From: Thalia democratica
Lineage: Eukaryota
DNA: 64,000 bases
Assembly: GCA_965202585.1 (NCBI GenBank)
Contig: OZ241833.1
Coordinates: forward strand, 13,144,001-13,208,000
Direction of reading: 5' to 3'
The notes under the pieces are model-generated. The model worked only from the letters and a program-made list of their open reading frames with translations, was not told the DNA's origin and searched no databases. This document shows, piece after piece, positions 35,701 to 58,886 of this stretch (positions are counted from its first letter, which is position 1; each line of letters opens with the position of its first letter). A program made the position numbers and the translations under genes.

Positions 35701-37462
35701 ATATATTGTGTTTAATAATTATAAAAATATAGAAATAATTGATTGATAAAGTAGCAGTCGGGTGTATAAATTAAGTATCCCATACGGATAAATTAAATAC
35801 TTAACTTAACTTAAATGTAGTTTTATAACAGTATAACAGAAAGAGAGCATAATTAAATTTATAACTTGATAGGCTACTAGCTGACTTAAGTTAAATCCAA
35901 ATAATTGAAAAGTGCATTGAAAATTTTCGAATGTTATTGATACTATCATTATGACGTAACTAATATATGGTTTAAACAGTTTAAATAGCTAGTTTAACAA
36001 TATTAGTACTGTACAGTCAAAAACATTTTAATTAACATTTATACATTCTAGTACTTCAACCTATTAAACAACTTTTTTTTTAATTAATAACTTTTTTTTT
36101 TCAAGTTTTGTTTTTTTGTTTTAAAATAAACAAAATCATTGCGAAAGTCTATAGAGCCTAAGCCTGGATTTTTATATACTTGTATGCTGTAAAACAAGCT
36201 CAAGTTTACATTCTTGTTTTACAGGTTCAAAAACTATTAATTTTACGCATCTCTTTTTACTTGATTTAACTTTAAAACATTTGCAAATGTAAGTTTTGTG
36301 GATATAGTTTTACATTGGTTGTTCTTTAGGTAAATTTTTGATTACTCCGGGTTCGACAAACATGAAACAGTTTATTTTTGTTTTAGTTAGACAAAGCTGT
36401 AGAGTTGTTAAGCCGTAAATATTGAGAGTCTTTTAAAACTACAATACTAACAAGATGAAATTTATTAATAAGTATTTACTAATAAAAATAATTGGTTATT
36501 TAAGATATTAATAAATTAAACTGATAAATCCCATAACTACAGCTTTGAAAATATATAATATACCTAAATAAACACTTAACTTTACACAATAGTATTCAAA
36601 CTTTAAAAATAAAAAACTTTTTCATTATAAGTAAAAATTGAGTTTGCTCTGTATCTAACAGGTCAATAAAAGTTTACATATATTGGATGTTGGAGATTGT
36701 GATTTACGTATAGAGTGTATCATTGCGTTGTCAACTGTTCTTACACAAAATACGCATCTAAAGGCAGTGGTACTAAGTCGTCCTATTTTTTTCTCACATC
36801 AGGAAGAGCAGGCAGTTCACATTAGCAGAATGCTTCGAATGAATTCGAGCCTTACAGAGATTCATTTAGAAAAATTCGATCTGCAAGACTTTGGTTTAAA
36901 AACGTTATGTGAAGGCTTGTTAGAAAACTGTGTGCTTAAGTACCTTAACATAAGCAGCAACCGTTTTTCTCGAGATGGAGGTCATATATTGGCTAAATAT
37001 TTAAAAGAAAATACTCCTCTTGAAATTCTTGATGTATCTAATAATAGACTAGAAGATGAGGGTATTTCAATCATATCAAACTCTCTTGCTTTATACAACA
37101 CACATCTACTAGCTCTTTCAGTACGATTTAATCAAATAGGACCAGCTGGTTTATACAATTTGTCACAGTCGCTGTACCACAATAAAGTACTAAAAAACTT
37201 GTATGTTTGGGGTAATAATACTACTAACTCAAAAGGATGTGCAGCCATTGGCCAGCTTTTAGCTAACAAGCGTATAAAAGAAAGAAATACAGATGTTAGA
37301 CCTTATGTTGTTAATGGTGAAATGTGCTTAGCTGAACTTTCACATGGCTTGAAAAGATTTTACTACTGGACACCAACCTATGGGCCTGACCTCAACCCCT
37401 ATAAAGAAATAGAAGACCACCCATGTGATGTCGGAGATGGATATACGTTGCCATCATGGTAA
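29753..37462 (+). CDS. LRRC34: Leucine-rich repeat-containing protein 34, 2 coding exons, 437 aa
   Basis: Exon 29753-30265 (ends ALQ|gtagtt, phase 0) joins exon 36662-37462 (ctaacag|VNKSLHILDVGDCDL). RI-like LRRs (LDLRYNNL, LNLLGNNI, LRLTGNKIG, LDVSNNRL) plus the C-terminal D/V-PY-V.G...LAE-S-GLKR-YYW-PTYG segment characteristic of LRRC34. Confidence 0.88.
31995..32186. mobile_element. hAT-type MITE (TAGTGATGTACCG TIRs) inserted in the hAT transposase ORF
   Basis: TIRs TAGTGATGTACCG/CCGGTACATCACTA; 8-bp TSD tttttgta/tttttgtg; internal CCGGATCCGG repeats. Removal restores S-T-K-T-T-S-V-E. Confidence 0.85.
32238..34122. mobile_element. Mutator-like TIR element (GGGTTACATGACAATTCAAATTC...) with nested inserts and an 18-bp flanking duplication
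   Basis: Same termini as the 8803-9220 copy. Flanked by CTTCGTTGAATCCTTCCT at 32220-32237 and 34123-34140. Confidence 0.85.
32787..33187. mobile_element. MITE with TTAA TSD and GGGCATAGGGGGGGTAAA TIRs (Kolobok-like)
   Basis: TTAA at 32783-32786 and 33188-33191. The paralogous uninterrupted site is visible near 35311-35330 (ggttatttcaactatttaat). Superfamily assignment rests on 5'-RR termini plus TTAA only. Confidence 0.75.
34887..35820 (+). repeat. About 0.9-kb unclassified interspersed repeat, second copy at about 32371-33670 (interrupted by the TTAA MITE)
   Basis: Colinear similarity from aaataaaaacaaatt..cagtaatcttcctttatt through atcccatac.gata; no TIRs or ORF recognised. Confidence 0.8.
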
Positions 37463-38792: not shown

Positions 38793-41700
38793 TTAACACC
38801 TAGTTCCAACACAACGTTGTCTATCCACAGGCAAGCCAAATGTTACACATTTCGTAAATGGCTCTGACACAGTTTCACCTCCCCTTTCGCTAATGCAATA
38901 CCTAAACCTCCTTCTGTTTCCCCTTCCGCATCGCCTGCTACATGGGCCCCAAGAAGTCCATTCGGTGAAACGTGTCGTACACTCTTCACTGCCACACTCT
39001 TCCACCTGTTAATTAAACTTGTTGTTTTTTTTATAATTCTACTTTTAGTCATCGACTAGTAGTATTAGAAATATACTATTTTTTTTTAATTTTACCAATT
39101 TATTGAAATATATTAATGTAGATTTCAAATGACTAAAACCTTTAGCATGCAGCTTTGGTCTCGAGGTCTGGCACTTTGAGGCCTTACAAGTCCTTTTCCG
39201 TCACATCTTCTCATTACAGTAACTTTTCCATTGCATTCAGCACTGCATTTGCCTATTTCCTTCCATTCGCTCCAGTTATTACACATTCCACGATTACATG
39301 CCTTAGTCTCGTTGCTGTTACTGTTTCCAAAACGGGTATCTGCGCAAAATTTCGGATCTACCGGTTTTCCTTTTTGCACACAGCTTCTGGTTCTGAATGT
39401 TTCACCTTCACCACATTTTTCGTCGCACATTGCCCATTGTGACCATTGTGAAAATACTGCTCGGCAGTATCCTTTGCACTCTTTAAAATCAGTGTAGCAG
39501 GACTGATCAAATATTTGAGCTGTTTTAGGAGAAAAAGACCTGTTAGATTGACAAACACGATTTCGTTTCTGAATTCCTCTCTGACCACACATAGATGCTG
39601 TACAACTTCCTACTACCCACGTAGACCATTTAGGACAGATACCTATATTACAAACTTTAACTTCAGTGTTGCCTTCGCGAACAATTTCCTCTAGGTCTGC
39701 AGGCTCACCAATTTTTAAGTCAGCACATTGTTCTAGTTCTACAGCTTCCCCGTCCAATAAGCAACCGCGAGTTCTCTTTGTTTCACCAACAGCACATTTA
39801 TTTGAGCATTTTGACCATTCTGTCCAGGGACCCCAAGAAAATATGCATTCCCGGAAGCATTCGACTGTTTGGAATGTACACTCTTCCGGCGTGTCCATTT
39901 TGTTGTACATTGGGTTAGAACATGTCCTTGTTTTGACTAAGAAACCTAAGCTATTGCAGCTGGCTTCGCAACTAGTCTCTTGCCAATCATTCCAAATTTC
40001 ACAGAAATCTTCTTGACATTGTTTTTCCTCATATGGCTCTCCATCTTCACATCTACTACTTTCCACGAGTTCCCCTTTTACGTAGCAACTCCTGGTTCGA
40101 TTATGCCAAGTTGGACTACAAAAGCTATCGCAATAAGACCAGTCACTCCAAGGACCGAAAATTCCAGGACACAAGTCGCCTAAGCATTTTGTTACATTTT
40201 TTTCACACTGCGCATTAGAAGGAAAACTACTTGGTGAATTGCAGTGTCTTTTCCACTCTATAGTTCCTTCTTCTTCACAAAAAGCATTGCAAGGTGTTGC
40301 TAAAGTAAATTCTGACCAGTTACTACACATTTCTTCATTACACTCTCCTTCTTCTAAAAAGTTTTCTTCATTTCCACAATCCCCATTTTGAGTTAAATCT
40401 CCAAACTCTGTCAAGCATGACCTTGTTCGCGTTCTAAAACCTGGCGTACAGGAGGTGGAACATTGTGACCACTCTCCCCAATCACCCCATTCAGGTGGAC
40501 ATGTAGGTGGACCTTCACATTCTCGCATTTCAGCGTAGCACAAACGTTGGTGAGATCTGAGCCTGAAATTTTTAGTTTCTGATGAACACATTCTTTTCCA
40601 ACGTTGCATAGAAGTAGATCTACAAGGAGCGTCGCATTCTTCTGCAGGTTCCCAGTCGTACCAAACAGAGCATAAGTTTTCGTTGCAAGTTTTTGTTTCT
40701 AAGTTCAAGCCTTGTTTCGGACACTCTGAGTTATCTACAAGCGTGCCATTTTCGTTAAAGCAAAATCTTTCACGTGTCTGTTCTCCTGGAGAGCATATAT
40801 TAGAACAATTCGACCATTCTTGCCATTGCCCCCATTGAGCGGGACATATTGGTGGTCCATTGCACGTTCTAGTGTCTTCGTAACAAGTTTTTTTATGCAA
40901 GTTTAGATCAGTATTAACCAAACATAACTTTGTGAAATTTTGCATAGATTTTTGGCGACACTTCGCCTGACATTTTTCTGTAGGTTGCCAGTCCGACCAT
41001 TGTGAACACAAATCACTGTTGCATACTTTTTCTTCAATATAGTCTAAAGTATCAGGGCATTGAGAATTATCAACTTGAGTTCCATTTTCATTTAGGCATG
41101 GTCTTATGCGCTCTTTTACTCCTGGACCACAAGATTCAGAGCAAAGTGACCAGTCATTCCATTCTCCATATTCAGGAGGACATACTGGGACACCTAGGCA
41201 TGTTCTAGTTTCAGAATAGCATGATTCTTTATGAGTAGTTAAGTCAACAAAAATACTACATGACCTTTTAAATGGCTGATCTGCTGTACTTCTACACTCT
41301 GCAGAACAGTTTTCTGCTTCAATCCATGGTAACCATTTTGGACAAAGTTCTTCATTACAGTCTCGAGTCTGTAGATAACTTTCATCACCAGTACATTTAG
41401 ACACAACTACTACTGTTCCGTTTTCATTTATGCAATTCCTTTTTCTTGTGCTTACACCTGGAACACAAACTTCAGAACATGAAGACCAAGAATCCCATTC
41501 TCCCCACTGTGGAGGGCATACAAGTGCTCCATAACATACTCTGTTTTCCTTATAACAACTTTCAATATGTAAATAAAGATCAATAGTGGTATTGCATGAT
41601 CTTTGCCAAGTTTGATTTGCAGTTTTTCTACACTCTGCAAAACAATCATTTTCAGGAGACCAATTGGACCAGTATGGGCAAAGATGACTGTTGCAACTTT

Positions 41701-44700
41701 GCTCTTCAACAAAACTAAATGGATCTTTACACTCTTTATTACTGACTTCAGTACCATTCTCACTTAGACATGGTCTCTGACGTTCTTTAAAACCAGGACC
41801 GCAAGAGTCAGAGCAACTTGTCCACGGTTTCCAAGATCCCCACTCAGGTGGGCATATAGAGGCACCTGAACAAATCCTGGTTTCTAAGTAGCAGTCTGAA
41901 TCATGTTCTTCTATGTCTATTTCTTCAAAGCAAGTTCTTACAAAAGTTTGGTCAGCTAAGGATCTACACAATGCTGAACAGTTTTCAGCAGCGGTCCAAT
42001 TAGACCATAGAGAACAAAGATTTGGGTTGCAAACTTCTGTTTGTAAACTAGAGCTTGTACTTGAACACTGTAAATTGTCAACTAAAGTTCCGTTTTCATT
42101 AAAACATTTTCTTATTCTTTCTCTGATACCAGGTGTACATGAAGATGAACAATTTGTCCAAGGCTGCCAATCACCCCATTCTGGCGGACATATTGGAGTT
42201 CCGGAGCATATTCTTTTTTGTTCGTAGCAAAAAGATTGGTGAACTTCAAGTTCCACGTTTTCTTTGCACATCCTATTGAATTTTTGATCACTTGTTGACC
42301 TGCAATTAGCATTACAACTCTCAGAAGGTTGCCACTGTAGCCAGAGAGGACAAAGATTGGTGTTACAAGGTTTACTTTCAGTATGACTTTCCGCACTATA
42401 ACATTCAGCATTGTGAACAACTGTTCCGTTTTCATTTATACACGGTCTTGTCCTATGTTTAACTCCCGGTGTACAGTCTTCAGAACAAGTAGACCAAGGT
42501 TCCCAATCACCCCATTGAGGTGGGCATATCGGTGGTCCGTAACAAGTTCTAGTTTCCTCATAACAGTTAAGATCATGTAAATTCAAGTCAACATTTTCAT
42601 TACAAGTTTTAACAAATAGTTGATCTGTTGAAGATCTACACTCAGCTGTACAATTATCTAAAGCCTCCCATTCAGACCAATCAGGACATAAATTATCGTT
42701 GCATTTACTTTCTTCAATAAAAGATTCAGGATTTTCACACTGTGAGACTTCTACAACAGTTCCATTTTCATTAAGACAAGGTCTGAAACGTTGATGCAAT
42801 CCTGGTGAACATGAGTTAGAGCAATTAGACCAGGACTCCCATGATCCCCATTCAGGAGGGCATATTGGAGGTCCGTAACAAACTCTTGTTTCTTCATAAC
42901 ATTTTTTAGCGTGAATGTTTAAGTCAATATCTTTTGTACACGTTTTTACAAATACTAGATCGGATTTCGAACGACATTCAGCAGTGCAGTTTTCTGTTGG
43001 TTGCCAGTCTGACCATACAGGACATAGGTTTTGGTTACAAGCTTCTTTTTCTGAATATTCTGTTGGTACTGGACATTCAGATCTATCAACTATAGTACCA
43101 TTTTCATTTATACACGGTCTTGTTCTATGTTTAATTCCAGGTGTACAGTCTTCAGAACAGGTAGACCAAGCTTCCCAATCACCCCATTGAGGTGGGCATA
43201 TTGGTGGTCCGTAACAAGTTCTAGTTTCTTCATAACAGTTAAGATCATGTAAATTCAAGTCAACATTTTCATTACAAGATTTAACAAATAGTTGATCTGT
43301 TGAAGATCTACACTCAGCTGTACAATTTTCTAAAGCTTTCCATTCAGACCAATCAGGACATAAATCTTCGTTGCATTTCCCTACTTCGATATAAGATTCA
43401 GGGTTTTCACACTGTGATATTTCTACAACAGTTCCATTTTCGTTAAGACAAGGTCTGACACGTTGATGCAATCCTGGTGAACATGAGTTAGAGCAATTAG
43501 ACCAGGACTCCCATGATCCCCATTCAGGAGGGCATATAAGAGGTCCGTAACAAACTCTTGTTTCTTCGTAACATTTTTTTGCATGAATATTCAAGTCAAT
43601 ATCTTTTGTACACGATTTTACAAGTACTAGATCGGATTTTGAACGACATTCAGCAGTGCAGTTTTCTGTTGGTTGCCAATCTGACCAAAAAGGACATAGA
43701 TTTTGGTTACAAGCTTCTTCTTCTGAATATTCAGTTGGTACTGGACATTCAGATCTATCAACTATAGTACCATTTTCATTTAAACACGGTCTTTTTCTAT
43801 ATTTAACTCCCGGTGTACAGTCTTCAGAACAAGTAGACCAAGGTTCCCAATCACCCCATTGAGGTGGGCATATCGGTGGTCCGTAACAAGTTCTAGTTTC
43901 TTCATAACAGTTAATGTCGTGCAAATGCAAGTCAAGAATTTCTTTACAAGTTTTAAAAAATATTTGGTCTTGAGAAGATCTACACTCAGCTGTGCAATTT
44001 TCTAAAGCTTTCCATTCAGACCAATCAGGACATAAATCTTCGTTGCATTTCCCTTCTTCGATATAAGATTCAGGGTTTTCACACTGTGATATTTCTACAA
44101 CAGTTCCATTTTCGTTAAGACAAGGTCTGACACGTTGATGCAATCCTGGTGAACATGAGTTAGAGCAACTAGTCCAGGACTCCCATGATCCCCATTCAGG
44201 AGGGCATACAAGAGGTCCGTAACAAACTCTCGTTTCTTCGTAACACTTTTTAGCGTGAATGTTTAAGTCAATATCTTTTGTACACGATTTTACAAGTACT
44301 AGATCGGATTTCGAACGGCATTCAGCAGTGCAGTTTTCTGTTGGTTGCCAATCTGACCAAACAGGACATAGGTTTTGGTTACAAGCTTCTTCTTCTAAAT
44401 GTTCTGTTGGTACTGGACATTCAGATCTATCAACTATAGTACCATTTTCATTTATACACGGTCTTTTTCTATGTTTACTTCCCGGTGTACAGTCTTCAGA
44501 ACAAGTAGACCAAGGTTCCCAATCACCCCATTGAGGTGGGCATATCGGTGGTCCGTAACAAGTTCTAGTTTCTTCATAACAGTTAATGTCGTGCAAATGC
44601 AATTCAACATTTTCTTTACAAGATTTAACAAATAGTTGATCTGTTGAAGATCTACACTCAGCTGTACAATTTTCTAAAGCTTTCCATTCAGACCAATCAG

Positions 44701-47700
44701 GACATAAATTTTCGTTGCATTTTTTTTCCTCATTATAAGAATCAGGATTTTCACAATGTGAGACTTCTACAACTGTACCGTTCTCGTTAAGACAAGGTCT
44801 GACACGTTGATGCAATCCTGGTGAACATGAGTTAGAGCAACTAGACCACGTTTCCCATGATCCCCATTCAGGAGGGCATATTGGAGGTCCGTAACAAACT
44901 CTCGTTTCTTCGTAACACTTTTTAGCGTGAATTTTTAAGTCAATATCTTTTGTACACAATTTTACAAATACTAGATCGGATTTCGAACGGCATTCAGCAG
45001 TGCAGTTTTCTGTTGGTTGCCAATCTAACCAAGCAGGACATAGATTTTGGTTACAAGCTTCTTCTTCTAAATATTCTGTTGGTACTGGACATTCAAATCT
45101 ATCAACTATAGTACCATTTTCATTCAAACACGGTCTTGTTCTATGTTTAACTCCCGGTGTACAGTCTTCAGAACAAGTAGACCAAGGTTCCCAATCACCC
45201 CATTGAGGTGGGCATATCGGTGGTCCGTAACAAGTTCTAGTTTCTTCATAACAGTTAATATCGTGCAAATTTATATCATTATTTTCTTTACAAGATTTAA
45301 TAAATAGTTGATCTGTTGAGGATCTACACTCAGCTGTACAATTATCTAAAGCCTCCCATTCAGACCAATCAGGACATAAGTTTTCGTTGCATTTCCCTTC
45401 TTCGATATAAGATTCAGGGTTTTCACACTGTGATATTTCTACAACAGTTCCATTTTCGTTAAGACAAGGTCTGACACGTTGATGCAATCCTGGTGAACAT
45501 GAGTTAGAGCAATTAGACCAGGACTCCCATGATCCCCATTCAGGAGGGCATATAAGAGGTCCGTAACAAACTCTCGTTTCTTTATAACATTTTTTTGCAT
45601 GAATATTCAAGTCAATATCTTTTGTACACGATTTTACAAATACTAGATCGGATTTTGAACGACATTCAGCAGTGCAGTTTTCTGTTGGTTGCCAATCTGA
45701 CCAAAAAGGACATAGGTTTTGGTTACAAGCTTCTTCTTCTAAATGTTCTGTTGGTACTGGACATTCAGATCTATCAACTATAGTACCATTTTCATTCAAA
45801 CACTGTCTTGTTCTATGTTTAACTCCCGGTGTACAGTCTTCAGAACAAGTAGACCAAGGTTCCCAATCACCCCATTGAGGTGGGCATATCGGTGGTCCGT
45901 AACAAGTTCTAGTTTCTTCATAACAGTTAATATCGTGCAATTGCAAGTCAAAATTTTTTTTACAAGATTTAAAAAATAGTTGATCTGTTGAGGATCTACA
46001 CTCAGCTGTACAGTTTTCTAAAGCCTCCCATTCAGACCAATCAGGACATAATTCTTTGTTGCATTTTCGTACTTCGATAAAAGATTCAGGGTTTTCACAC
46101 TGTGAAACTTCTACAACAGTTTTATTCTCGTCAAGACAAGGTCTGACACGTTGATGCAATCCTGGTGAACATGAGTTAGAGCAACTAGACCACGTTTCCC
46201 ATGATCCCCATTCAGGAGGGCATATTGGAGGTCCGTAACAAACTCTTGTTTCTTCGTAACATTTTTTAGCATGAATATTCAAGTCAATATCTTTTGTACA
46301 CGTTTTTACAAATACTAGATCGGATTTCGAACGACATTCAGCAGTGCAGTTTTCTGTTGGTTGCCAGTCTGACCAAACAGGACATAGGTTTTGGTTACAA
46401 GCTTCTTCTTCTAAATGTTCTGTTGGTACTGGACATTCAGATCTATCAACTATAGTACCATTTTCATTTATACACGGTCTTGTTCTATGTTTAATTCCCA
46501 GTGTACAGTCTTCAGAACAAGTAGACCAAGCTTCCCAATCACCCCATTGAGGTGGACAAACTGATGGCCCCTTACATACTTTTGTTTCCTTATAACATTC
46601 AATATTATGGTTTGTAATAATTGTTGATTGAGAGCATTTTCTTTCGAACTCTTGACTACTTGTAGATTTACATTTTGCACTGCAAACTGCTGTTGGTTTC
46701 CATTCGAGCCATGATTGACACAAGTTTTCGTTACAAGTTCGTTCGTCAATGTACTTTTCTGGATTTGAACAAGCTGTAAAATTAACACTTGTTCCGTTTT
46801 CATTCAAACATAGTCTATTTCTTCTCTGTAATCCTGGAGTACAAGAATTTGAGCAATTCGACCAAGCTTGCCATTCACCCCATTCAGGAGGACATATAGG
46901 TGGTCCTGTGCAAGTTCTTGTTTCAGAATAGCACTCTTCATTATGAACTTTGTGATCCATTTCAATCGAGCAATTTCTTTTAAACACTTGTTCACCTTGT
47001 GACCTACAATTCGCCGTGCAATTTTGTGTAGGCTCCCAGTTGTTCCAATATGGACAATAATTAGAGTTACATACTTCTTTTTCATAAAAAGAATCAGGAT
47101 TTACACATTCTTTGTTTTCTACTAGCGTATTGTTTTCATTATAACATGCCCTATTACGCGTTTTTATTCCTGGACTGCACGAAACCGAACAGTTTGACCA
47201 AGGTTCCCAATCTCCCCAGTGTGGAGCACATACTGGAGAACCATAACATAGTCTAGTATCTTTATAGCACTCTAAACTGTGTAAAGATAAATCTGTTGGT
47301 TCAGAACAAGTTTTAATGAATACTAGCTCAGCAGATGAACGGCAGAGAGCAGTGCAATTTTCAATTGCTTTCCAGTCTGACCATAATGGACACAATTTTT
47401 CATTACAGGTCGATACTTCTTTGTCAGTGTTAGGGTTTTCACATTCGAAATTGTCAACTAGTATACCATTTTCATTAAAACACGATCTTGATCTAGTTTT
47501 TACACCTTTTGCACAGCTTTCTGAACACCCTGACCAATGATGCCATGTACCCCACTTAGAAGGACAAATAGATGGTCCATTACAAGTACTATTCTCCATA
47601 TAGCATTCTGAAGAGTGTAAAGTCAAGTCAGTTTCTTGTTTACATTTTTTCAACAACAAAATATCAGCTGTTGATCTGCAATCAGCTGTACAGTTTTCAA

Positions 47701-50700
47701 TTTCTTCCCAGTCAGACCAAACTGGACACAAGTTTTTGTTACATTCAATTTGTTCACTATATTTGTCGAAACTTGGACAATGAGAAACATCTACTATTGT
47801 ACCGTTTTCATTTGAACATTTTCTTGATCTTTGTTGGATTCCTGGAGAACAAGATTGAGAACAGCTTGACCAGGCTTCCCATTCATTCCACTGTGGAGGA
47901 CAGACTGGTGGGCCATGACAAGTCTTTGTATCTTTATAACATAATTCTTGATGTAAACTTAAGTTAGTTTCGCTTTCACACGTTTTAAAATAATTTAGTT
48001 TTGCTGATGATCTGCATTTAGCTGTGCAGTTTTTCGAAGGTTTCCATTTAGACCAAAGGCGACATAAATTTTCATTGCAAAGTTGCTTTTGTTTATATTC
48101 ACTGTTTGGACATTTTAAATAGTCTGCGATAGTTGAATTTTCATTCAAACATAACCTTGTTCTTTCTTGAAAACCCGGCGTACAAGTTTCGGAACAATTA
48201 GACCATGGTTTCCATGACCCCCATTCTGGAGGACATATGGAAGGTCCATCACATGTTCTAGTTTCTACGTAACAGCTTGGCGAATGTAAACTGAAATTGA
48301 TATCATTCTTTCCAAAACAAGTTTTTCTGTAAACAAGCTCAGCAGTCGATCTACATTTTGCTGTGCATTGTCCAGTTGGTTCCCATACATCTGACCAAAC
48401 TGGACATAGTTCTATGTTACAAGCTTGTTCTTCGATATAATCATTTGGATCATCACATTCAGATTTGTTTATAGTCGTTCCATTTTCATTTACACAAGGT
48501 CTTAAGCGTGTTTGTACACCTGGAGTACAGGATTTCGAACATGAAGACCACGTTTCCCAATTCCCCCATCGTGGTGGACATATTTTAGGTCCTGAACAAG
48601 CTCTAATTTCTTCATAACATTTTTTCTCGTGAAAACTTAAGTCAACATTTTGAAGGCAACTCTTTACAAACAATTGATTGGTAGAAGATCTACACTTTGC
48701 TTTACAATTTTCTTTTGCTATCCAATCTGACCAAACAGGACATAGGTTTTGGTTACAAGCTTCTTCTTCTAAATATTCCCGTGGTACTGGACATTCAAAT
48801 CTATTAACTATAATACCATTTTCATTTATACACGGTCTTGTTCTATGTTTAATTCCCGGTGTACAGTCTTCAGAACAAGTAGACCAAGCTTCCCATTCGC
48901 CCCATTGGGATGGGCATATCGGTGCTCCGTAACAAGTTCTAGTTTCTTCATAACAGTTAATATCGTGCAAATTTATATCTTTTTTTTTTTTACAATATTT
49001 AACAAATAGTTGATCTGTTGAGGATCTACACTCAGCTGTACAATTTTCTAAAGCCTCCCATTCAGACCAATCAGGACATAAGTTTTCGTTGCATTTACTT
49101 TCTTCAATAGACGAACCAGGGTTTTTACACTGTGAAACTTCTACAACAGTTCCATTCTCGTTAAGACAAGGTCTGAAACGTTGATGCAATCCTGGTGAAC
49201 ATGAGTTAGAGCAATCTGACCAGGACTCCCATGATCCCCATTCAGGAGGGCATATAAGAGGTCCGTAACAAACTCTCGTTTCTTCGTAACACTTTTTAGC
49301 GTGAATGTTTAAGTCAATATCTTTTGTACACGATTTTACAAATACTAGATCGGATTTCGAACGGCATTCAGCAGTGCAGTTTTCTGTCGGTTGCCAGTCT
49401 GACCAAACAGGACATAGGTTTTGGTTACAAGCTTCTTCTTCTGAATATTCTGTTGGTACTGGACATTCAGATCTATCAACTATAGTACCATTTTCATTTA
49501 TACACGGTCTTGTTCTATGTTTAACTCCCGGTGTACAGTCTTCAGAACAAGTAGACCAAGTTTCCCAATCACCCCATTGAGGTGGGCATATCGGTGGTCC
49601 GTAACAAGTTCTAGTTTCTTCATAACAGTTGATATCGTGCAAATGCAAGTCAACATTTTCTTTACAATATTTAACAAATAGTTGATCTGTTGAGGATCTA
49701 CACTCAGCTGTACAATTTTCTAAAGCCTCCCATTCAGACCAATCAGGACATAAGTTTTCGTTGCATTTACTTTCTTCAATAGACGAACCAGGGTTTTTAC
49801 ACTGTGAAACTTCTACAACAGTTCCATTCTCGTTAAGACAAGGTCTGAAACGTTGATGCAATCCTGGTGAACATGAGTTAGAGCAATCTGACCAGGACTC
49901 CCATGATCCCCATTCAGGAGGGCATATTGGAGGTCCGTAACAAACTCTTGTTTCTTCATAACATTTTTTAGCGTGAATGTTTAAGTCTATATCTTTTGTA
50001 CACGTTTTTACAAATACTAGATCGGATTTCGAACGACATTCAGCAGTGCAGTTTTCTGTTGGTTGCCAGTCTGACCATACAGGACAAAGGTTTTGGTTAC
50101 AAGCTTCCTTTTCTGAATATTCTGTTGGTACTGGACATTCAGATCTATCAACTATAGTACCATTTTCATTTAAACACGGTCTTGTTCTATGTTTAACTCC
50201 CGGTGTACAGTCTTCAGAACAAGTAGACCAAGGTTTCCAATCACCCCATTGAGGTGGGCATATTGGTGGTCCGTAACAAATTTTAGTTTCTTCATAACAG
50301 TTAAGATCATGTAAATTTATATCAATATTTTCTTTACAAGTTTTAACAAATTGTTGATCTGTTGAAGATCTACACTCAGCTGTACAATTATCTAAAGCTT
50401 TCCAGTCAGACCAATCAGGACATAAATTTTCGTTACATTTTTCTTCTTCAATAAAAGATTCAGGATTTTCACACTGTGAGACTTCTACAACTGTACCGTT
50501 CTCGTTAAGACAAGGTCTGACACGTTGATGCAATCCTGGTGAACATGAGTTAGAGCAATTAGACCAGGACTCCCATGATCCCCATTCAGGAGGGCATATA
50601 AGAGGTCCGTAACAAACTCTTGTTTCTTCGTAACATTTTTTAGCATGAATATTCAAGTCAATATCTTTTGTACACGATTTTACAAATACTAGATCGGATT

Positions 50701-53700
50701 TTGAACGGCAATCAGCAGTGCAGTTTTCTGTCGGTTGCCAATCTGACCAAACAGGACATAGGTTTTGGTTACAAGCTTCTTCTTCTAAATATTCTGTTGG
50801 TACTGGACAGTCATTTGTATCAACTATAGTACCATTTTCATTTAAACACGGTCTTGTTCTATGTTTAATTCCTGGTGTACAGTCTTCAGAACAAGTAGAC
50901 CAAGGTTCCCAATCACCCCATTGAGGTGGGCATATCGGTGGTCCGTAACAAGTTCTAGTTTCTTCATAACAGTTGATATCGTGCAAATGCAAATCAACAT
51001 TTTCTTTACAAGATTTAAGGAATAGTTGATCTGTTGAAGATCTACACTCAGCTGTACAATTTTCTGAAGCGTTCCATTCAGACCAATCAGGACATAAATT
51101 TTCGTTGCATTTTTTTTCCTCATAATAAGAATCAGGATTTTCACAATGTGAGACTTCTACAACAGTTCCATTTTCGTTAAGACAAGGTCTGAAACGTTGA
51201 TGCAATCCTGGTGAACATGAGTTAGAGCAATCTGACCAGGACTCCCATGATCCCCATTCAGGAGGGCATATTGGAGGTCCGTAACAAACTCTCGTTTCTT
51301 CGTAACACTTTTTAGCGTGAATTTTTAAGTCAATATCTTTTGTACACAATTTTACAAATACTAGATCGGATTTTGAACGGCAATTGGCAGTGCAGTTTTC
51401 TGTTGGTTGCCAATCTGACCAAACAGGACATAGATTTTGGTTACAAGCTTCTTTTTCTGAATATTCAGTTGGTACTGGACATTCAGATCTATCAACTATA
51501 GTACCATTTTCATTTAAACACGGTCTTGTTCTATGTTTAATTCCCGGTGTACAGTCTTCAGAACAAGTAGACCAAGGTTCCCAATCACCCCATTGAGGTG
51601 GGCATATTGGTGGTCCGTAACAAGTTCTAGTTTCTTCATAACAGTTAAGATCATGTAAATTCAAGTCAACATTTTCTTTACAGGATTTAAGGAATAGTTG
51701 ATCTGTTGAAGATCTACACTCAGCTGTACAATTTTCTAAAGCTTTCCATTCAGACCAATCAGGACATAAGTTTTCGTTGCATTTTTCTTCTTCAAAAGAC
51801 GAACCAGGGTTTTTACACTGTGAAACTTCTACAGCTGTACCGTTCTCGTTAAGACAAGGTCTGACACGTTGATGCAATCCTGGTGAACATGAGTTAGAGC
51901 AATCTGACCAGGACTCCCATGATCCCCATTCAGGAGGGCATATAAGAGGTCCGTAACAAACTCTTGTTTCTTCGTAACATTTTTTAGCATGTATACTTAA
52001 ACTTGTACTTTTTGTACATGTTTTCTTAAACTTTTGATTTGTTTTTGAACGGCAATCAGCCGTGCAGTTTTCAATCGGTACCCAATCTGACCACGCCGGG
52101 CATAGTTCCTTGTTACATTTCTTTTGTTGAATGTAATTTTCGCTGTTTCCACACTCTAAATTATTTAATACTGAATTACTTTTATCCATGCATTTTCTCG
52201 TTCTAACTGTAGTTCCAGGACTACAATCAGAGGAACATGCTGACCAATTTTCCCATAAGCTCCATTTAGTTAAACACTGTCTTTCATTAATGCAATTTAT
52301 TTTTTCAAAATAGCAGGCTTCGTCGTGGTCCTTGAGATCGAAATTAATTGGTTCACGCAAACATGTTTTGTTATAGGTTTCATAGCCTATAGATTCGCAT
52401 TTAGCATCACAGCTTTTACTAAATTCCCATTCAGACCAAATAAAACAGAGTTTTGAATTGCAAGTTCTTTTTTCTTTTAAGTCCCCAGCAGGACATTCCA
52501 TTTCACTAACAGCTTTACCACCTACAAAGCACACTCTTGAACGTTCTTGAAAACCTCTTGTGCACGATTGTGAACAATCTGACCATTGGTTCCATTCTCC
52601 TAAAGTATATTTAGTATCACTTCGACAACTTTTTTCACTTACACAAGCTCTAATTTGAGAATAGCATGTAGACTTTAAACTTTGATAATCGAAACGAAAA
52701 TCATTTGTATTACATACTCTTTTAAAAATTCGGTACCCTCTACCCTGGCATTCGGCTTGACAATCTCCATCCGGCATCCAATCGCTCCAACGTGAGCATG
52801 AAGCTTCATTACAAGGTTTTGTTTGGCTGCTTTCGTTTTCGTTACAATTGACATTGTCTAACTGATTGTCAGCATTGTTTAGGCAAGTTCTTGTTCTGTT
52901 TGTTATTCCTGGACTACATTCATTTGAGCATTTTGACCAAGAATTCCAATTTGACCAACCAGATTCCTCAGTATTTTTTAGAAAATTTTTGAATGTTGTA
53001 TCTAAAATGTTTAAAGAATTTTGTAAGCTTTTTAGAAACACTTTTAATTGTCTTTGTGTTCTTTTAAAAAAAATTTATTTACGTTATTTTAAACAATACT
53101 TGTTTTTAAGTCTTTTTTATATAAAGTAATTGTGTAGTTTTATTCAAAAATAAATGCAATTTGTTAAGCAAATAATTCAAAAAATTTTTGTTAAAAACAT
53201 TAAATGTTTTAGTTGAAAACTAACTTAAGGGCTTCTACAACTAAAATTGTTAGCTAAAATATCAACATTATTTGATTCACCCACATTTTATCTTTCTTTT
53301 GGAAAAGTTTCTCAGCAATGAAATGTACAATTAACAAAAAATGTACTACTAAATAATACAAAATATTAAGATATAAAAGTTTAGTTTCTACTTTAGTTTA
53401 ATAACCATTTGTCTAGTACTATTTTTTAGACATGCTATCGCTTTCCGCTTTGTTTCAGTTTAATTGTACTCTAACAAGTTTTAATAGTACAGGAAAGTCG
53501 TATCGCATTTAATTAATTTTTAATCTAACCTTAGTTTTTTACTTTAACTTCATTTTATATTTTAAAGTTTTAACCTTCTGACCACAATATAACATTATTT
53601 TAGTCTTAAATTAAGTAGATACATTTTTTATACGTATTACTTAAAAGTCCATTTAATTTTTTGTCACCTTTTACTTTTTTTTTAATATAAACTGTATGTG

Positions 53701-56700
53701 TAACATAGTTTCTAGATTTCTCTAAGCAAGTGACCACATAATTATTTTGTGCATAAAACTTAAGGTTCAAACAAGCAAACATTTATTTAGTTTTAATAAG
53801 AACTTATATTATAAAACGCACGACAAACAAATTTAAAAGTTGACGCTTATTTATAAAATATCAAAAAAATTATCTGTATTAAAATTACTAACAGACCTAC
53901 AAAAACACTATTCTTTTCAAGTAAAGGTTGAGAAAAGATTATTTACTTTCTTTTTAAATATTGACAAAAGCTTTTAGAATCTTTATTTTCTTACTTTGGA
54001 TAACATTAGAATAAGAATGTTTATACTTACACTTTTTGAGGTATATTTATATTTTAATTAACAAATCTAACCAATGTTGTGGTAGCAAGACGGAAAATTT
54101 TTACTATCATAGCAGCACCCTTTACTTAGACACTTTGATTGCGAAATAAATGTATTTGAACATGGCTTTCTTTGAAAAACTTCTATAAAACATTGGTCCT
54201 TGCAAAATTCTGTTGTAATAATGTTTTGTGTCAATAACTGAAATTTTATACTTTGTTCGTAACCGCTTTTAGCTTATGCTCACTTGATAACTTATAAAAA
54301 TAAAGTCTAATTCAGTTTGAGTACATCTATTTACGATAATTAAATACCTTGAACATTAAAATGAAACTAAATTTTTAAAGTTTTAATCTTTTTACAAAAG
54401 AGTTTAAATTTTTATTTGGAGACAGTATGTATTATTTTTGAACATAATCTTTGATATAAAATTACTTTCATGTGCAAACTAAGATAGATTTTTTTAGCAT
54501 ATAAGCGAACGTTTGAAAAAACTATAAAAAAATGTTTTTTAAATTTGTAATATTAAAGAAATGCCATAAATCTTTAAATTGTTTGGAGTTTATGTTATAC
54601 CAATATATTTAAAGAGATAAAAAATTAAAAACACATTTGGTAAAAGTTTACCTTTTCAACACTTAATACTATGTGTGCTAAATATTTTTCTAAGCATATG
54701 ATATACTTTTTTATAGTTGTTTATATATATTTTTATTAGCACAAGCTTGTTATTCTAAAACTAGTTTACAAAGTATGTTACTTTAGTGACCCTTTCTTTC
54801 ATAGCAGTCTGGGACATTTTCATGTTGACTTTGTTGGTAGCAACAACCATTTTTGTTACATTCTTTTCTATCAAGTTTTCCTTGACCTCGAGGGCAATCT
54901 TTTCGCTCACTATCAGGTATTTTGCAGTAGCAATTAAGATGACGAGGGAAGATTTTTGTAAAATCAAAGTTGTTCTCTTTTATCACGTTTTCTTCTAAAA
55001 AAAGTCGTTTTCAGTTAATCAGATAAATAAATATTAAACTAATAAAGTTAAGTTATCTTTCTTTTTAGAATTAAAATATGACATTAATTTTAAAATTTCA
55101 AAAAAAAAAACTATTTTTGTTGCTTCCGCTGTCCTTTGTTTTTCCGTACAATTTTTCTAGCTCCTCAGGATACTCAGTTTGCATTGTCTCACCCTTGTTA
55201 ACAAAGTTTTCGAAAACATCTTCTGTTTTTATTTGTTACATAAACTATTTTTATACCAACAATTCTTTGCTTATTTTATTTAAAAAGCTGTATTTAACTA
55301 TATCTTTCAGCCTACAAAAAATTTTGTTTTTGTAAAACTAACGCTTCTCGTTTAAAAGTTTTCATAGATAAATAGAACATTTTTTACTATTATGGTGCTC
55401 TAGTTAAAATGTATGTTAAACCTTTAGAACTTTGTGTAAAAATAAACTGCTTAAAGTTTATCTATTAAATTAAGTAATGTTTTCTATATTGTTTTGTAAT
55501 GATCGATTTTTTTTTCTTAATCAGTTAACCATACATTTTACTATTCTTTAAAAAATTTAAGAGAATTAAACTATACTTTTAAACTTATTTAGTCATAGTT
55601 ACATATTTAAAAAGTACTTTAGTTATTTCTCAAACTTATAAAACTTTGAAACAATAAACTTTGCATACAAAAATCTGCAAATAAGTAAAAAGTTAAACAG
55701 TGTAACAAGTTTTTTTTAAATTATGTAGTAAAGTTTTTAGATAGTTTTACCAGATTTGCAATTAGAATTTTTTATAAAAAAAATTTGATGCAAGTAGAGC
55801 CGTACTAGGTGTTTTTCTTTTAATTTATTTCAATAATTAAACTTTCTACGAAAAATTTAGTTGTGTATTTGATAAGTTTAACTTTATATTTATGTTCTAA
55901 ACTAAAAAATATGAAGTAAAAGTGCTTAAATGGTTTTGTATTATGTTCTTTGAATTTAGCTGTTAAATCAAACTGTAAACAAATATTTTAAACATTTGTT
56001 TAACTAACAATTAAAACAATGTACTTTTAATTTATCGAAACTACTTTTAGATATTTGTTTTTGCTAATTCTTTTTTAATACTGTGCTGTATATCTTAACA
56101 CAGAACTTAAGTTTAGATGTTAAAAATGTTAGATTACTTGCATGTTTGACAAAAAAATCTACAACAAATTCATCGGAGTATAACAACATCTTTTTACTAA
56201 GTACTTTCTATATTGAAACTGACACATATTTCTTTTTGTTAAACTAGTTATCATTCTTTTAAAGATTTATTGAAGTAATATGAAAAGCTTCAAATTGATA
56301 ATGAATAAAACTATTTTACTTTTCAGTTGCAAATGGAATTTATTTAAAGCATTTAAACATAGCAACTTTTGTAGAAATATAGTTCTAGCAGCTTACAAGA
56401 CGCCAATTTTTAACTGATAAGAACTGTATTGATAAATAAATTATGATGAGTTATCTAAAAGTTTATAGTTTTAGAACAATTTTTCTTAAGTTCATCACCA
56501 AAACTTGTCAATTAACAGAGTCATAATGTATTTTAACAGGCTTTTTTTAATCAAAGTTATATATTTAAATTAAACCTTGTGCATAGTAACAAGATGGAAA
56601 TGTTCGTCTGTCAAAACAACACCCCTTACTCTCACAAGCAGATTTAGATGCCATCCAGCTCAAGCAAGGACTCCGAAGTCTTTTTTCGACCGAACAACGA

Positions 56701-58886
56701 TTTACACAAGATTCTGTAAATGAGATAGGTGCAAAGTATAACATTTTCAGTTTTAGAAAAATTAAAAGTTTTAAACTTTATTTAAAAGTTTTAAAATATT
56801 GAAAATTATGTATACAGTGTTTATTCACTTATCCGTAAAGTTTTACTTGAGAAGAAAAAAAAAATCAATATTTAACACAAACACTTTTGTGTGATACAAT
56901 TATTTAAGCTTTTATTCTGTAAGAAAGTTTAAAGTGTAATTATAAATTCTGCAATTTAGTTTGCAATTATGACGTATTAATACTACTAAAGCTTACATTT
57001 AAACTTTATTCAAAACTGGAAACAGATTTACATGTTTTTCATTGTGATTAATTTGTTTATATTTTTATAGACAAATACAATTATTATTTTTCTTAATCAA
57101 ATATTAGTCTATTTTAAATTAAAAGTAAGGGCAGGTGAAATTACAAAAGATGAATTTTTATACAGTGCGGCCCGCGAGCAAGTTTTTCTAAAAAAATTGT
57201 CTTGCGACTTATAAAAGGCTGCCGATTCACAGATTGTAACTATTTATACTAAGTAAAAAATATTATTATGTATGAAATTTTCTGTGTGCTGCCAATCTTT
57301 TATAATAGCTAACTAACTAACTTAATTAAAACAAATTTTAGGAAAAAAATTCTTGCGTAGCATTTTATTAAGAGCAAAAAAGTTATATTTAAGTACAAAC
57401 TTTTTTTTAAAAAACATCTTGGAGCATCCTCACTCAATGGTTCAATATAGCAGCACCCATACTTATGACAAGTTAATTGATCAAGATCGGCTGCATTTTC
57501 TCCACACGGTTCCCTGTAACCTTCTAAGACTTCACAATAGCAGCTTCTTTTTGCTGAAATTTTTTAACAAATAAAGCAAAAAAAGATAGGTTTTACTTTA
57601 GGTTTTTTCTAACTCAATAAAACGGCAGTATGTGTACGCTCTACTTTAATGACCTACTGCGTTTTGCTTCTAATAAAATCTGAAAAGCTCTATGAGTCAG
57701 TTGTTTTAATTTTTAATTGAGCGTTGAATGTTTTGATCCCTAAAATTTAACGCCTTGTTGCTATGTCTTTATCTTGTTTTTCAACAGGAAAATTTTTACT
57801 TTTATTAGTTATAAGTTTATTTCTGATATGAAATATTACTTTTGTTATAACTTCAATTATTTTTGTTATTTACAGAAAACTCATAAAATATTTAGTATTA
57901 CAAATAGCAGTATAAAGTTATAAAAATAGATTTTTGTAATACAATTTTAAGAAAAGTATTAAAAATGTTTTTGTTAGTTGAATTCAGCCTGATACTTATA
58001 AAACAATCCTTACCCCTAAAGTATTATAAGTGCTGAGTATAAAATATTTTTGGACTAAAATGTTGAAGAATTTTATAATTTAGTTATTTTAAACTTGTTT
58101 TAATTGTAATTGTTTATTGATCAACAAAAAAGCGTTTAATAAATTTAGTCTAAGGACCTTGTGTACGAAAAAACATTTCGGTTATCAAGTCATACTCCAC
58201 GGATACTGTTTCATGTCTTGTTAAAGTAATTTAATTATTTACATGAAATATTTATTTGTTTAACCTTTTTAATTTTTACTTTATTTAAAAAAAAACGGTT
58301 ATTTTTTACTAACTTTTGCTATTTTTAACACGAATATGATTTGATAAAAATTTTATAACTTAAAACGGCTCAATCAAAAGCAAATACCTGGACAAAAGTT
58401 AAACTGTATCCGTGGTGCGTGATTTGATAAACAAAAGGTTTTTTCGTACACCAGGTCCTTTGACCAAAGTTTTTGAGCGCTTTTTATTCTTTAATAAATA
58501 AACAATGTCTATTTTGTTTTTAATATTTTAAAAATCGATAGATTGAACAATTTTTTAGATTTTTATGCTTAAAGTACTAATGGAGCATTTTAAATATTTC
58601 AATGAAAATAGATAAATTTTGTTGTGTTTTGTTATACAGTTACAAATGACAGATAAGTATTATTTTGTAAAAAATCAATAGATTTATCGTTCTTAACATT
58701 GCAAAATATCTTTACAAGTACATTTTTTAAAACAAACAAAAAGTTGTTTTAGATTTTCATTTTAACCATTATTGTCAACTAACAATGAAAAAGATCGAAT
58801 TTTTCAAATATGGCATCACTTTTCACACTAGAACCCGATAGGAAGCTAAATACTAATAGTAAAACTATAAAACTACTTTTCTGCAT
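38793..58886 (-). CDS. Giant secreted protein: signal peptide + 3 trefoil (P-type) domains + 83 TSR-type modules, 4927 aa
   Basis: Minus-strand exons 58886-58784 (MQKSSFIVLLLVFSFLSGSSVKSD, signal-peptide-like), 57553-57401, 56713-56576, 55222-55112, 54994-54791, 53001-39140, 39005-38793 sum to 14784 nt = 4928 codons including the stop. All junctions are GT-AG with matching phases (1,1,1,1,1,0). No transmembrane segment seen. Additional small exons cannot be excluded. Confidence 0.85.
39140..53001 (-). CDS. Giant 13,862-nt coding exon encoding 41 canonical TSP1 repeats alternating with 41 divergent TSR-like modules
   Basis: Uninterrupted ORF (track 39125..53041). Acceptor aacattttag|AT ACA at 53001; donor CTA AAG|gtttta at 39140. 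Recurrent WGxWxxWSxCSxxCxPG..RxRxC motif alternates with WSDWxxxENCTAxCRS. Confidence 0.95.
42430..46555 (-). repeat. Coding higher-order repeat block 2 (units B,A x6 + partial B; 672-bp period)
   Basis: Same A/B units as block 1. Recurrences at 42915, 44259 (2 x 672), 45000, 45672, 46344 (672 steps). Boundaries approximate. Confidence 0.9.
48740..51935 (-). repeat. Coding higher-order repeat block 1 (units A,B x5; 672-bp / 224-aa period)
   Basis: Near-identical DNA segments recur every 672 bp (e.g. shadow ORFs at 49305 and 49977). A = EWGSWESWSDCSNSCSPGLHQR; B = QWGDWEPWSTCSEDCTPG.KHR. Boundaries approximate. Confidence 0.9.
54791..54994 (-). CDS. Trefoil (P-type) domain exon 3 of the giant gene
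   Basis: Phase 1-1 exon, 204 nt: ...LNCYCKIPDSERKDCPRGQGKLDRKECNKNGCCYQQSQHENVPDCYERK. Confidence 0.85.
56576..56713 (-). CDS. Trefoil (P-type) domain exon 2 of the giant gene
   Basis: Phase 1-1 exon, 138 nt: SCVNRCSVEKRLRSPCLSWMASKSACESKGCCFDRRTFPSCYYAQ; classic C-x9-C-x9-C-x4-CC spacing. Confidence 0.88.
57401..57553 (-). CDS. Trefoil (P-type) domain exon 1 of the giant gene
   Basis: Phase 1-1 exon, 153 nt: KRSCYCEVLEGYREPCGENAADLDQLTCHKYGCCYIEPLSEDAPRCFLKK; C-x9-C-x11-C-x4-CC-x11-C spacing. Confidence 0.85.
58114..58497. mobile_element. MITE with about 100-bp TIRs; full copy of a dispersed family with single-arm copies across the window
   Basis: Arms AAAAAGCGCTCAAAA..GGTC.AAGGACCTGGTGTACGAA..GGTTATC are inverted here. 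Related arms at about 2500, 3411, 6960-7050, 14965/15536-15605, 19895, 24140, 25690-25800 and 28555-28645. Confidence 0.75.

Follow-up and report, generated by a model that had tools for sequence, protein, structure and literature searches.

In a 64,000-nucleotide stretch of the genome of the tunicate Thalia democratica (NCBI GenBank assembly GCA_965202585.1, contig OZ241833.1, positions 13,144,001 to 13,208,000 of the forward strand; hereafter the window), a single giant minus-strand exon encodes 41 strictly alternating pairs of two cysteine-rich modules. One of them, here called A, is a canonical type-1 thrombospondin repeat (TSR), and the other, B, is a shorter module with six cysteines and two tryptophans. 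The original prediction, made from the letters of this stretch, read B as a remodelled TSR that standard hidden Markov models may score poorly, and possibly as a flexible or ligand-binding spacer. Our analysis upholds the first part of this claim and speaks against the flexible spacer. B extends a known domain by a further variant and does not amount to something new in kind, and its arrangement with A is already present, unrecognized, in annotated sea-squirt proteins, with a conceptual precedent in THSD7A. The explanation that we favor is that B is a divergent type-1 TSR, that the A-B pair is old, that its alternation is self-perpetuating and that the product is a stiff secreted rod; taken as a whole we consider it highly probable.

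The alternating array and its two modules

The exon product comprises 4,634 residues and lies within a stop-free minus-strand frame of 4,638 codons (39125-53041). Parsing of the translation gives the module order (AB)x41 without a single AA or BB junction, and the starts of successive A modules are 112 residues apart in 33 of the 35 central intervals, the other two measuring 111 and 115. The unbroken alternation of canonical and divergent TSRs over 41 units, as it was originally described, is thereby confirmed, and a further spliced exon adds a 42nd A. The total product reads A(BA)x41, that is, 83 modules behind three trefoil domains.

A modules are 57 residues long, with a cysteine spacing of 3-10-12-11-4 and all six cysteines in 41 of 41 copies. 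The tryptophan motif WxxWxxW is present in 38 of the 41 (in one of these as YxxWxxW) and the strand-B motif RxR in all of them, and 22 of 41 carry the POFUT2 O-fucose motif CxxS/TCxxG. The linkers are short: two residues after A (P-x) and three after B, mostly PPE or PPQ.

B modules have a length of 55 residues in 34 of 41 copies and a cysteine spacing of 3-11-12-6-5. B has one residue more than A in the C2-C3 loop and fewer in the C4-C5 segment (6 versus 11 residues). Six cysteines lie within the giant exon in 40 of the 41 copies, and the last copy, B41, has four there, the other two being encoded by the following exon; by alignment column, five cysteines show no variation and the sixth has a conservation of at least 90%. 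Both tryptophans of WxxW are conserved in all 41 copies. At the position of the third, none of the 39 parsed copies has Trp, which is replaced by T, L, A, S, I or another residue. These counts agree with the earlier description of a module that keeps six cysteines and two tryptophans and loses the third. The accompanying claim that the RxR strand is lost in the central units holds for one of its two arginines: the first position is never Arg (F in 29 of the 39 parsed copies, Y in 3, W in 3, L in 3 and K in 1), but the second is still basic in 39 of 39 (K 29, R 10). K/R-x-R is retained in the three C-terminal B modules only. The O-fucose motif is found in none of the 41 B modules, and an N-C-T or N-C-S sequon is present in 28 of 41.

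Relation of B to known thrombospondin repeats

When the modules were scanned singly against Pfam TSP_1, TSP1_ADAMTS and TSP1_spondin (E<=0.01), 40-41 of the 41 A modules matched, compared with 0 of 40 B modules. The best related B match, to TSP1_CFP_C, reached 17.1 bits in one module, under the cut-off of 27. Matches of B or of the whole exon to Pfam DCX2_DCDC1, SAM_DprA and DUF5332, with E values down to 3.3e-8, were rejected as artefacts in which a weak match of 20 residues is summed over dozens of repeats; such summed matches are a trap for automatic annotation.

Profile and fold comparisons place B among the TSRs that these models miss. Aligned with hhalign, the B profile matches the A profile with 93.5% probability (E 2.3e-7) over 51 columns. 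Searched against all PDB sequences, it matches only thrombospondin-1 (TSP-1) TSRs and one TSR of BAI1. The alignment to TSP-1 TSR2, in the TSR2-3 entry (E 0.0099), runs end to end (positions 1-53), with all six cysteines and the first two tryptophans aligned. Opposite the third Trp B has a non-Trp residue, and of the RxR pair the first Arg is aligned with Phe and the second with Lys or Arg. C3 of B comes right after the (aromatic/R)-x-(K/R) strand, which is the type-1 cysteine register. Compared with TSP-1 TSR2 and TSR3 (PDB 1lsl, 3r6b, 7yyk), B thus shares the six cysteines and the first two tryptophans over its whole length but is without the third Trp, the first Arg and CxxS/TCxxG, and it differs in the C2-C3 loop (one residue longer) and the C4-C5 segment (shorter).

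The original prediction had proposed an AlphaFold model of a two-unit fragment, followed by Foldseek. An A-B-A-B fragment modelled with AlphaFold2, with 39 two-unit fragments as the alignment, has a mean predicted local distance difference test score (pLDDT) of 93.6, with means of 82-97 over blocks of 10 residues. In Foldseek, multi-TSR chains of properdin and TSP-1 align with this model over 114-252 columns, spanning A and B alike. Modelled alone, B has a pLDDT of 91.7, and its Foldseek and VIA matches are almost all TSRs: F-spondin TSR1 (template modelling score, TM, 0.59; E 0.2), the circumsporozoite-protein aTSR, Sema5A, BAI1, TSP-1, properdin (Z 3.6) and UNC5D. TSRs fill the first 16 VIA rows, and neither the VIA nor the Foldseek rows contain a different cysteine-rich fold. 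Language-model look-alikes of B, among those listed, all belong to TSP_1-family clusters. Because the profile, PDB-alignment, predicted-fold and language-model comparisons agree, the reading of B as a divergent paralogue of the type-1 TSR, neither a new fold nor a spacer, is strongly supported. The stack of B would be one rung shorter than the canonical one, roughly Trp-Lys/Arg-Trp with an aromatic residue as a cap.

The same evidence bears on three other identities for B. It could be an unrelated cysteine-rich fold (EGF-, TIL- or knottin-like) that imitates the WxxW start of a TSR, given that no Pfam TSR model recognizes it and that its single-domain structural scores are below usual significance. 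The profile match to A, the end-to-end alignment to TSP-1 TSR2 with six cysteines in register, the near-exclusive TSR content of the structural matches, the coverage of both modules by properdin and TSP-1 chains in the four-module model and the TSP_1 character of the language-model neighbors leave this idea with almost no credibility. A type-2 (F-spondin or complement C6-like) TSR would make the array an instance of the type-1/type-2 alternation of THSD7A, which has 21 TSRs of two alternating subtypes (PMC8298181; PMC8523383; bioRxiv 10.1101/2023.05.03.539264), and the top Foldseek match of the B-only model is indeed to F-spondin. But type-2 modules need an extra N-terminal C1-C4 bridge (bioRxiv 10.1101/2023.05.03.539264) and B has no cysteine of its own ahead of the first Trp, its six cysteines instead aligning with TSP-1 TSR2; Pfam TSP1_spondin matches no B module; and the THSD7A d1_d2 structure (8oxr) has a VIA Z of 2.4, below the canonical TSRs, and is absent from the matches of the B profile to PDB sequences at E<=10. 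Type-1 modules of THSD7A are also mostly WxxxxW (bioRxiv 10.1101/2023.05.03.539264), whereas A and B here are both WxxW. We regard a type-2 identity as very unlikely. Only slightly better placed is the idea that B is what remains of a degenerated TSR and now acts as a spacer, flexible or ligand-binding, that separates the functional canonical TSRs. One ladder Trp, one Arg and the O-fucose site have been lost, B stays under every Pfam TSR threshold and a reduced ladder could in principle mean lower stability. A spacer is nevertheless hard to reconcile with a module that is confidently predicted to be compact both alone and in context (pLDDT >90 in the four-module model), whose six cysteines, with their spacing, do not vary here and have been conserved in Ciona and Styela, whose ratio of nonsynonymous to synonymous substitution rates (dN/dS) is not above that of A (0.25 versus 0.37 between 672-bp copies) and which is flanked by proline-containing linkers of two and three residues. 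We therefore consider a spacer unlikely, and the flexible spacer of the original prediction is not borne out.

THSD7A remains the closest precedent for the arrangement; the comparison is based on papers, one solved didomain and the failure of the B profile to match that didomain. Like THSD7B, it has a long TSR array with two subtypes in alternation, and its 'type 1A' modules d1 and d2, with a two-Trp, one-Arg stack CC-W-PP-R-W-QQ-CC and type-1 disulfides (bioRxiv 10.1101/2023.05.03.539264), are a precedent for a non-canonical short stack. B is without the WxxxxW and the central Pro-Pro of type 1A. The alternation also differs in kind, since A and B are both in the type-1 cysteine register, whereas THSD7A alternates type-1 with type-2. 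Finally, THSD7A is a single-pass membrane protein of 21 modules with a short cytoplasmic tail, in contrast to the window product, which is secreted, has a trefoil head and contains 83 modules.

Age and persistence of the A-B pair

A profile of 40 B modules scored against 1.84 billion representative proteins gave 39 proteins at E<=0.001, and in the window's own 802-Mb genome its matches are confined to this exon. Alternating matches are found in Ciona intestinalis (XP_018672591.1), in Styela clava (XP_039265876), in several Logan, ENA and JGI contigs and in a 279-residue marine metatranscriptome protein (P0003; source 'merc') that is near-identical to the N-terminus of the exon product. The cluster of the Ciona protein also contains a newer Ciona model of 3,763 residues, XP_078495944.1, named 'SCO-spondin-like'. 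Classed with the A and B profiles of the window, Ciona has the module string AAB(AB)n..AA (57 modules), whereas canonical arrays such as that of Lingula SCO-spondin, classed in the same way, are A throughout.

The Ciona and Styela proteins, automatically named 'SCO-spondin-like' or 'ADAMTS adt-1-like', begin with a signal peptide and trefoil domains and have the same architecture of trefoils and alternating 3-Trp and 2-Trp TSRs. Their B modules are likewise without the third Trp. In B modules of other tunicates C2-C3 is 11 in 29 of 35 and C4-C5 is 6 in 33 of 35; none of the 35 has the O-fucose motif, and the second position of RxR is basic in 35 of 35 and the first in 21 of 35. The window product shows the family pattern: a candidate signal peptide, trefoils, strict 3-Trp/2-Trp alternation, B modules of the form C-x3-C-x11-C-x(11-15)-C-x6-C-x(3-5)-C and homology to Ciona and Styela at both ends. 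Its C-terminal modules and those of Ciona correspond one to one in part. It differs from both in being longer (83 modules), in its amplified block and in having an aromatic residue in place of the first ladder Arg in nearly all B modules. The ancestral B signature would then be the missing third Trp together with the spacing 3-11-x-6-x. Loss of the first Arg is not general to B, because the position is still basic in those 21 of 35; the change to an aromatic residue appears to be mainly a property of the subtype amplified in this genome, and hence mostly lineage-specific.

Modules of different species group by their 2-Trp and 3-Trp labels in a tree of 128 modules, with 9 and 8 changes as opposed to ~42 for shuffled labels (42.9 in the case of the 9). 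When the 57 B modules of the family are held together as one group, the best tree exceeds the free search in log-likelihood by 31.6 (p-AU, from the approximately unbiased test, 0.749), which is compatible with a single origin of B before the sampled tunicate lineages split. Given that the Ciona and Styela orthologues have both module types in the same alternation, a divergence of A and B before that split is strongly supported. The proposal that the pair is an ancient unit is consistent with all of this, that is, with the alternation and B cysteine spacing shared by Ciona, Styela and environmental contigs and with a single B group that is not rejected. The alternation had also been noted in the diverged terminal regions, and the unexpanded ends do alternate in every species examined. 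Neither outcome named as fatal to the original prediction was observed: B does not score as an ordinary TSR, and the pair itself was found only in one tunicate gene family.

The remaining observations concern a further family member and proteins of other kinds. Adjacent called genes of 315 and 360 residues on two ENA metagenome contigs of 10-12 kb (L004, L005) are consecutive exons of another member of the A-B family. The top match of all (P0001; 227.7 bits), KAK7506180.1 of the gastropod Batillaria attramentaria, is not a family member: it consists of ~13 two-Trp TSRs in tandem, without alternation, in which the first-Arg position holds Phe, the C2-C3 loop has 11 residues and the C4-C5 spacing is canonical. 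The Phe indicates that this substitution is tolerated elsewhere. A 675-residue protein from an ENA metagenome contig (P0023) has ~8 TSR-like modules with a cysteine ahead of a single-Trp motif and a C-x3-C-E-S-S-G core; although classed as B by the window profiles, these modules clearly belong to another type, possibly from a protist. Literature searches returned no paper on the window gene or its Ciona and Styela orthologues, whose database names are automatic only. The TSR protein of PMC6109156 is a different one (Ci-MACPF1).

How the pattern has persisted can be read in part from the DNA. A script that compared the exon with itself at fixed lags found an identity of ~24% at 168 bp, which is the random level, ~65% at 336 bp and 88-96% at 672 bp in two blocks (Table 1). 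The recently amplified unit is therefore the 672-bp A-B-A-B, because high identity appears at that lag and not at 168 or 336. Tandem Repeats Finder returned no repeat on the exon, its longest period being 500 and neighbors at 336 bp being only ~65% alike. The amplified block of the window contains two variants of one B subtype, and that of Ciona is an A-B-A-B with two different B subtypes; the other subtype is present in the window protein as a single copy near the C-terminus. Copies 672 bp apart give a dN/dS of 0.25 in B and 0.37 in A, and neighboring units, for which the comparison is near saturation, give 0.23 and 0.24. These values support purifying selection on B at least as strong as that on A.

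Because A and B share no DNA similarity (~24%), the alternation would perpetuate itself. Unequal crossing-over would pair only A with A or B with B and so produce gains and losses of whole A-B blocks (here A-B-A-B, 672 bp), and AA or BB junctions would never arise by such recombination. On this mechanism, the recombination register alone would account for the unbroken pattern of the amplified core. In the old ends, which are not amplified, the B signature is conserved too; the register leaves this unexplained, and it is a sign of constraint. Unlike neighbors (~25% identity) may plausibly be of advantage in that they would lessen non-native disulfides and domain swapping in a chain of 83 modules.

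The alternation may also have no functional meaning at all, being a frozen by-product of an ancestral A-B duplication, with the peculiarities of B due to neutral drift in a tolerant scaffold. The automatic keeping of register fits this well, as do the species differences in the amplified blocks, with one B subtype here and two in Ciona, and the lineage-specific replacement of the first Arg. Purifying selection on B and the alternation of unexpanded ends in every species examined argue the other way, and so does the conservation across tunicate lineages of the B cysteine spacing, the two tryptophans and the basic second position. We see in it a serious possibility, though short of an even chance. 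It addresses why the pattern persists and not what B is, and is compatible with most of the explanation that we favor, in which B is a divergent type-1 TSR in an old pair. At the more ambitious end, B may be a tunicate-specific short-stack TSR subclass that present domain models overlook, with an alternation that is functionally required (for folding, stiffness or glycan pattern), in a protein that is a main trefoil-headed fiber of the feeding net secreted by the endostyle. This we put forward tentatively, as rather improbable in its entirety.

Several points weigh against the favored explanation. No structural match of a single B module is strong or decisive by itself (Foldseek E 0.2 and VIA Z 3.6 at best), as is expected for 55 residues, and the disulfide pairing of B (putatively C1-C5, C2-C6 and C3-C4) and its exact stack are read off a sequence alignment. 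The B profile was built from one species, so that distant B-like modules outside tunicates could be missed. The tree rests on 59 columns with long branches, and its groups are defined by the tryptophan pattern, itself one alignment column. Gene conversion confounds dN/dS between repeat copies, and the lag-336 comparison is in addition near saturation. The avoidance of misfolding by unlike neighbors and the role proposed below are both conjectural, the latter being drawn from domain anatomy.

Gene structure, product and possible role

The array belongs to a gene that is transcribed and spliced in nature, given that RNA contigs with the intron removed were found in four runs. These contigs, from four marine metatranscriptome runs, span the 3' part of the gene, and all four skip the same 134 nt; the contigs of two runs match the window with an identity of 99% or more and those of the other two with 95-99%. 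The 3' boundary of the giant exon at 39140 is set by this spliced joint in the four RNA runs and by GT..AG on the minus strand. Upstream, three exons encode trefoil domains and a candidate first exon may encode a signal peptide, as judged from a hydropathy scan (Table 1). The last exon aligns weakly with the Ciona C-terminus. Its translation has no transmembrane or hydrophobic anchor segment and ends with an A module and a stop.

Table 1 Positions of the gene's exons and intron, representative modules and homogenized blocks in the window
Feature	Positions	Strand	Content and evidence
Candidate first exon	58782..58886	minus	Met at 58886, then a hydrophobic, signal-peptide-like stretch; hydropathy scan of minus-strand frames
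Trefoil (P-domain) exon	56583..56735	minus	Pfam Trefoil 30.9 bits (cut-off 21); tblastn with Ciona N-terminus, E 3.6e-10
Trefoil (P-domain) exon	54792..54935	minus	Pfam Trefoil 40.7 bits; tblastn with Ciona N-terminus
Trefoil (P-domain) exon	54079..54210	minus	Pfam Trefoil 36.4 bits; tblastn with Ciona N-terminus
Giant coding exon	39140..~53001 (5' end approximate)	minus	41 A and 41 B modules; array 39140-52957
Representative A module	50750..50920	minus	Canonical type-1 TSR, 57 residues; TSP1_ADAMTS 37.4 and TSP_1 29.7 bits, both above cut-off
Representative B module	50585..50749	minus	Putative short-ladder TSR, 55 residues; WxxW, aromatic-x-K, Cys 3-11-12-6-5, N-C-T sequon, no O-fucose motif
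Homogenized block 1, units 2-11	48569..51928	minus	Lag-672 identity 89-96% over most of the block, lag-336 ~65%
Homogenized block 2, units 18-29	42515..46546	minus	Lag-672 identity 90-95%
Intron, 134 nt	39006..39139	minus	GT..AG; divides the last B between Cys 4 and Cys 5
Last coding exon	38793..39005	minus	Cys 5 and 6 of B41, 42nd A, stop; covered by the same RNA contigs

Contigs of the two 95-99% identical runs show a second joint at 40507-41412, where 904 nt are skipped and 223 other letters stand in between. This does not look like an intron; more likely, a related strain or species differs here in repeat number or sequence, or the repeats were misassembled. The giant-exon stretch (40-52 kb) has 38-40% G+C, compared with 23-29% in most 2-kb bins of the window, and throughout it both the GC and the AT skew of the plus strand are negative. 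Beyond the gene, two plus-strand open frames at 29753-30310 (185 residues) and 36683-37462 (259 residues) encode leucine-rich repeats (LRRs) of the ribonuclease-inhibitor type (Pfam LRR_6, 41.6 and 54.1 bits, above cut-off) and are probably exons of a single neighboring LRR gene.

The product probably forms a stiff rod ~0.4 micrometre long that is heavily glycosylated and bears three trefoils at one end. This length would follow from 83 modules of ~5 nm each, taking the ~55 Å of the THSD7A domains d1 and d2 as a guide (bioRxiv 10.1101/2023.05.03.539264), joined by linkers of two to three residues. A stiff rod, as opposed to a hinge, is suggested by the shortness and proline content of the linkers together with the high pLDDT.

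As a giant secreted TSR-rich protein it resembles SCO-spondin, which has other domain types besides TSRs, namely VWD, LDL-receptor class A, EMI/TIL and a C-terminal cystine knot. None of these was found by Pfam, which on the 3,763-residue Ciona orthologue and the 4,634-residue exon product reported only TSP1-type and Trefoil domains, besides two spurious matches summed over repeats. For this reason, and as far as domain content goes, the 'SCO-spondin' name is an automatic label and not a sign of membership.

Trefoil domains of this kind bind mucin glycans in vertebrates. The most likely role of the protein is that of a structural fiber in a secreted mucus or matrix. To our knowledge, the protein composition of the feeding net that the tunicate endostyle secretes is poorly known.

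For the family, the immediate consequence is one of annotation. Pfam sees ~41 of the 83 modules and so undercounts the family by half; for an N-terminal Ciona model with 12 modules, its output is limited to five TSP_1 stretches. The orthologues are filed under the labels 'SCO-spondin-like' and 'ADAMTS-like', an error that a B-type profile would put right. For the TSR fold, B is a natural experiment in which the six-cysteine frame tolerates the loss of one Trp rung and, in one lineage, an aromatic residue stands in place of a ladder Arg. It thereby forms a counterpart to the 'type 1A' TSRs lately reported in THSD7A. The array also shows how two unlike modules have kept a perfect alternation through repeated amplification of a 672-bp block. 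Should the protein prove to be a component of the feeding net or the tunic, it would provide a molecular handle on an ecologically important material.

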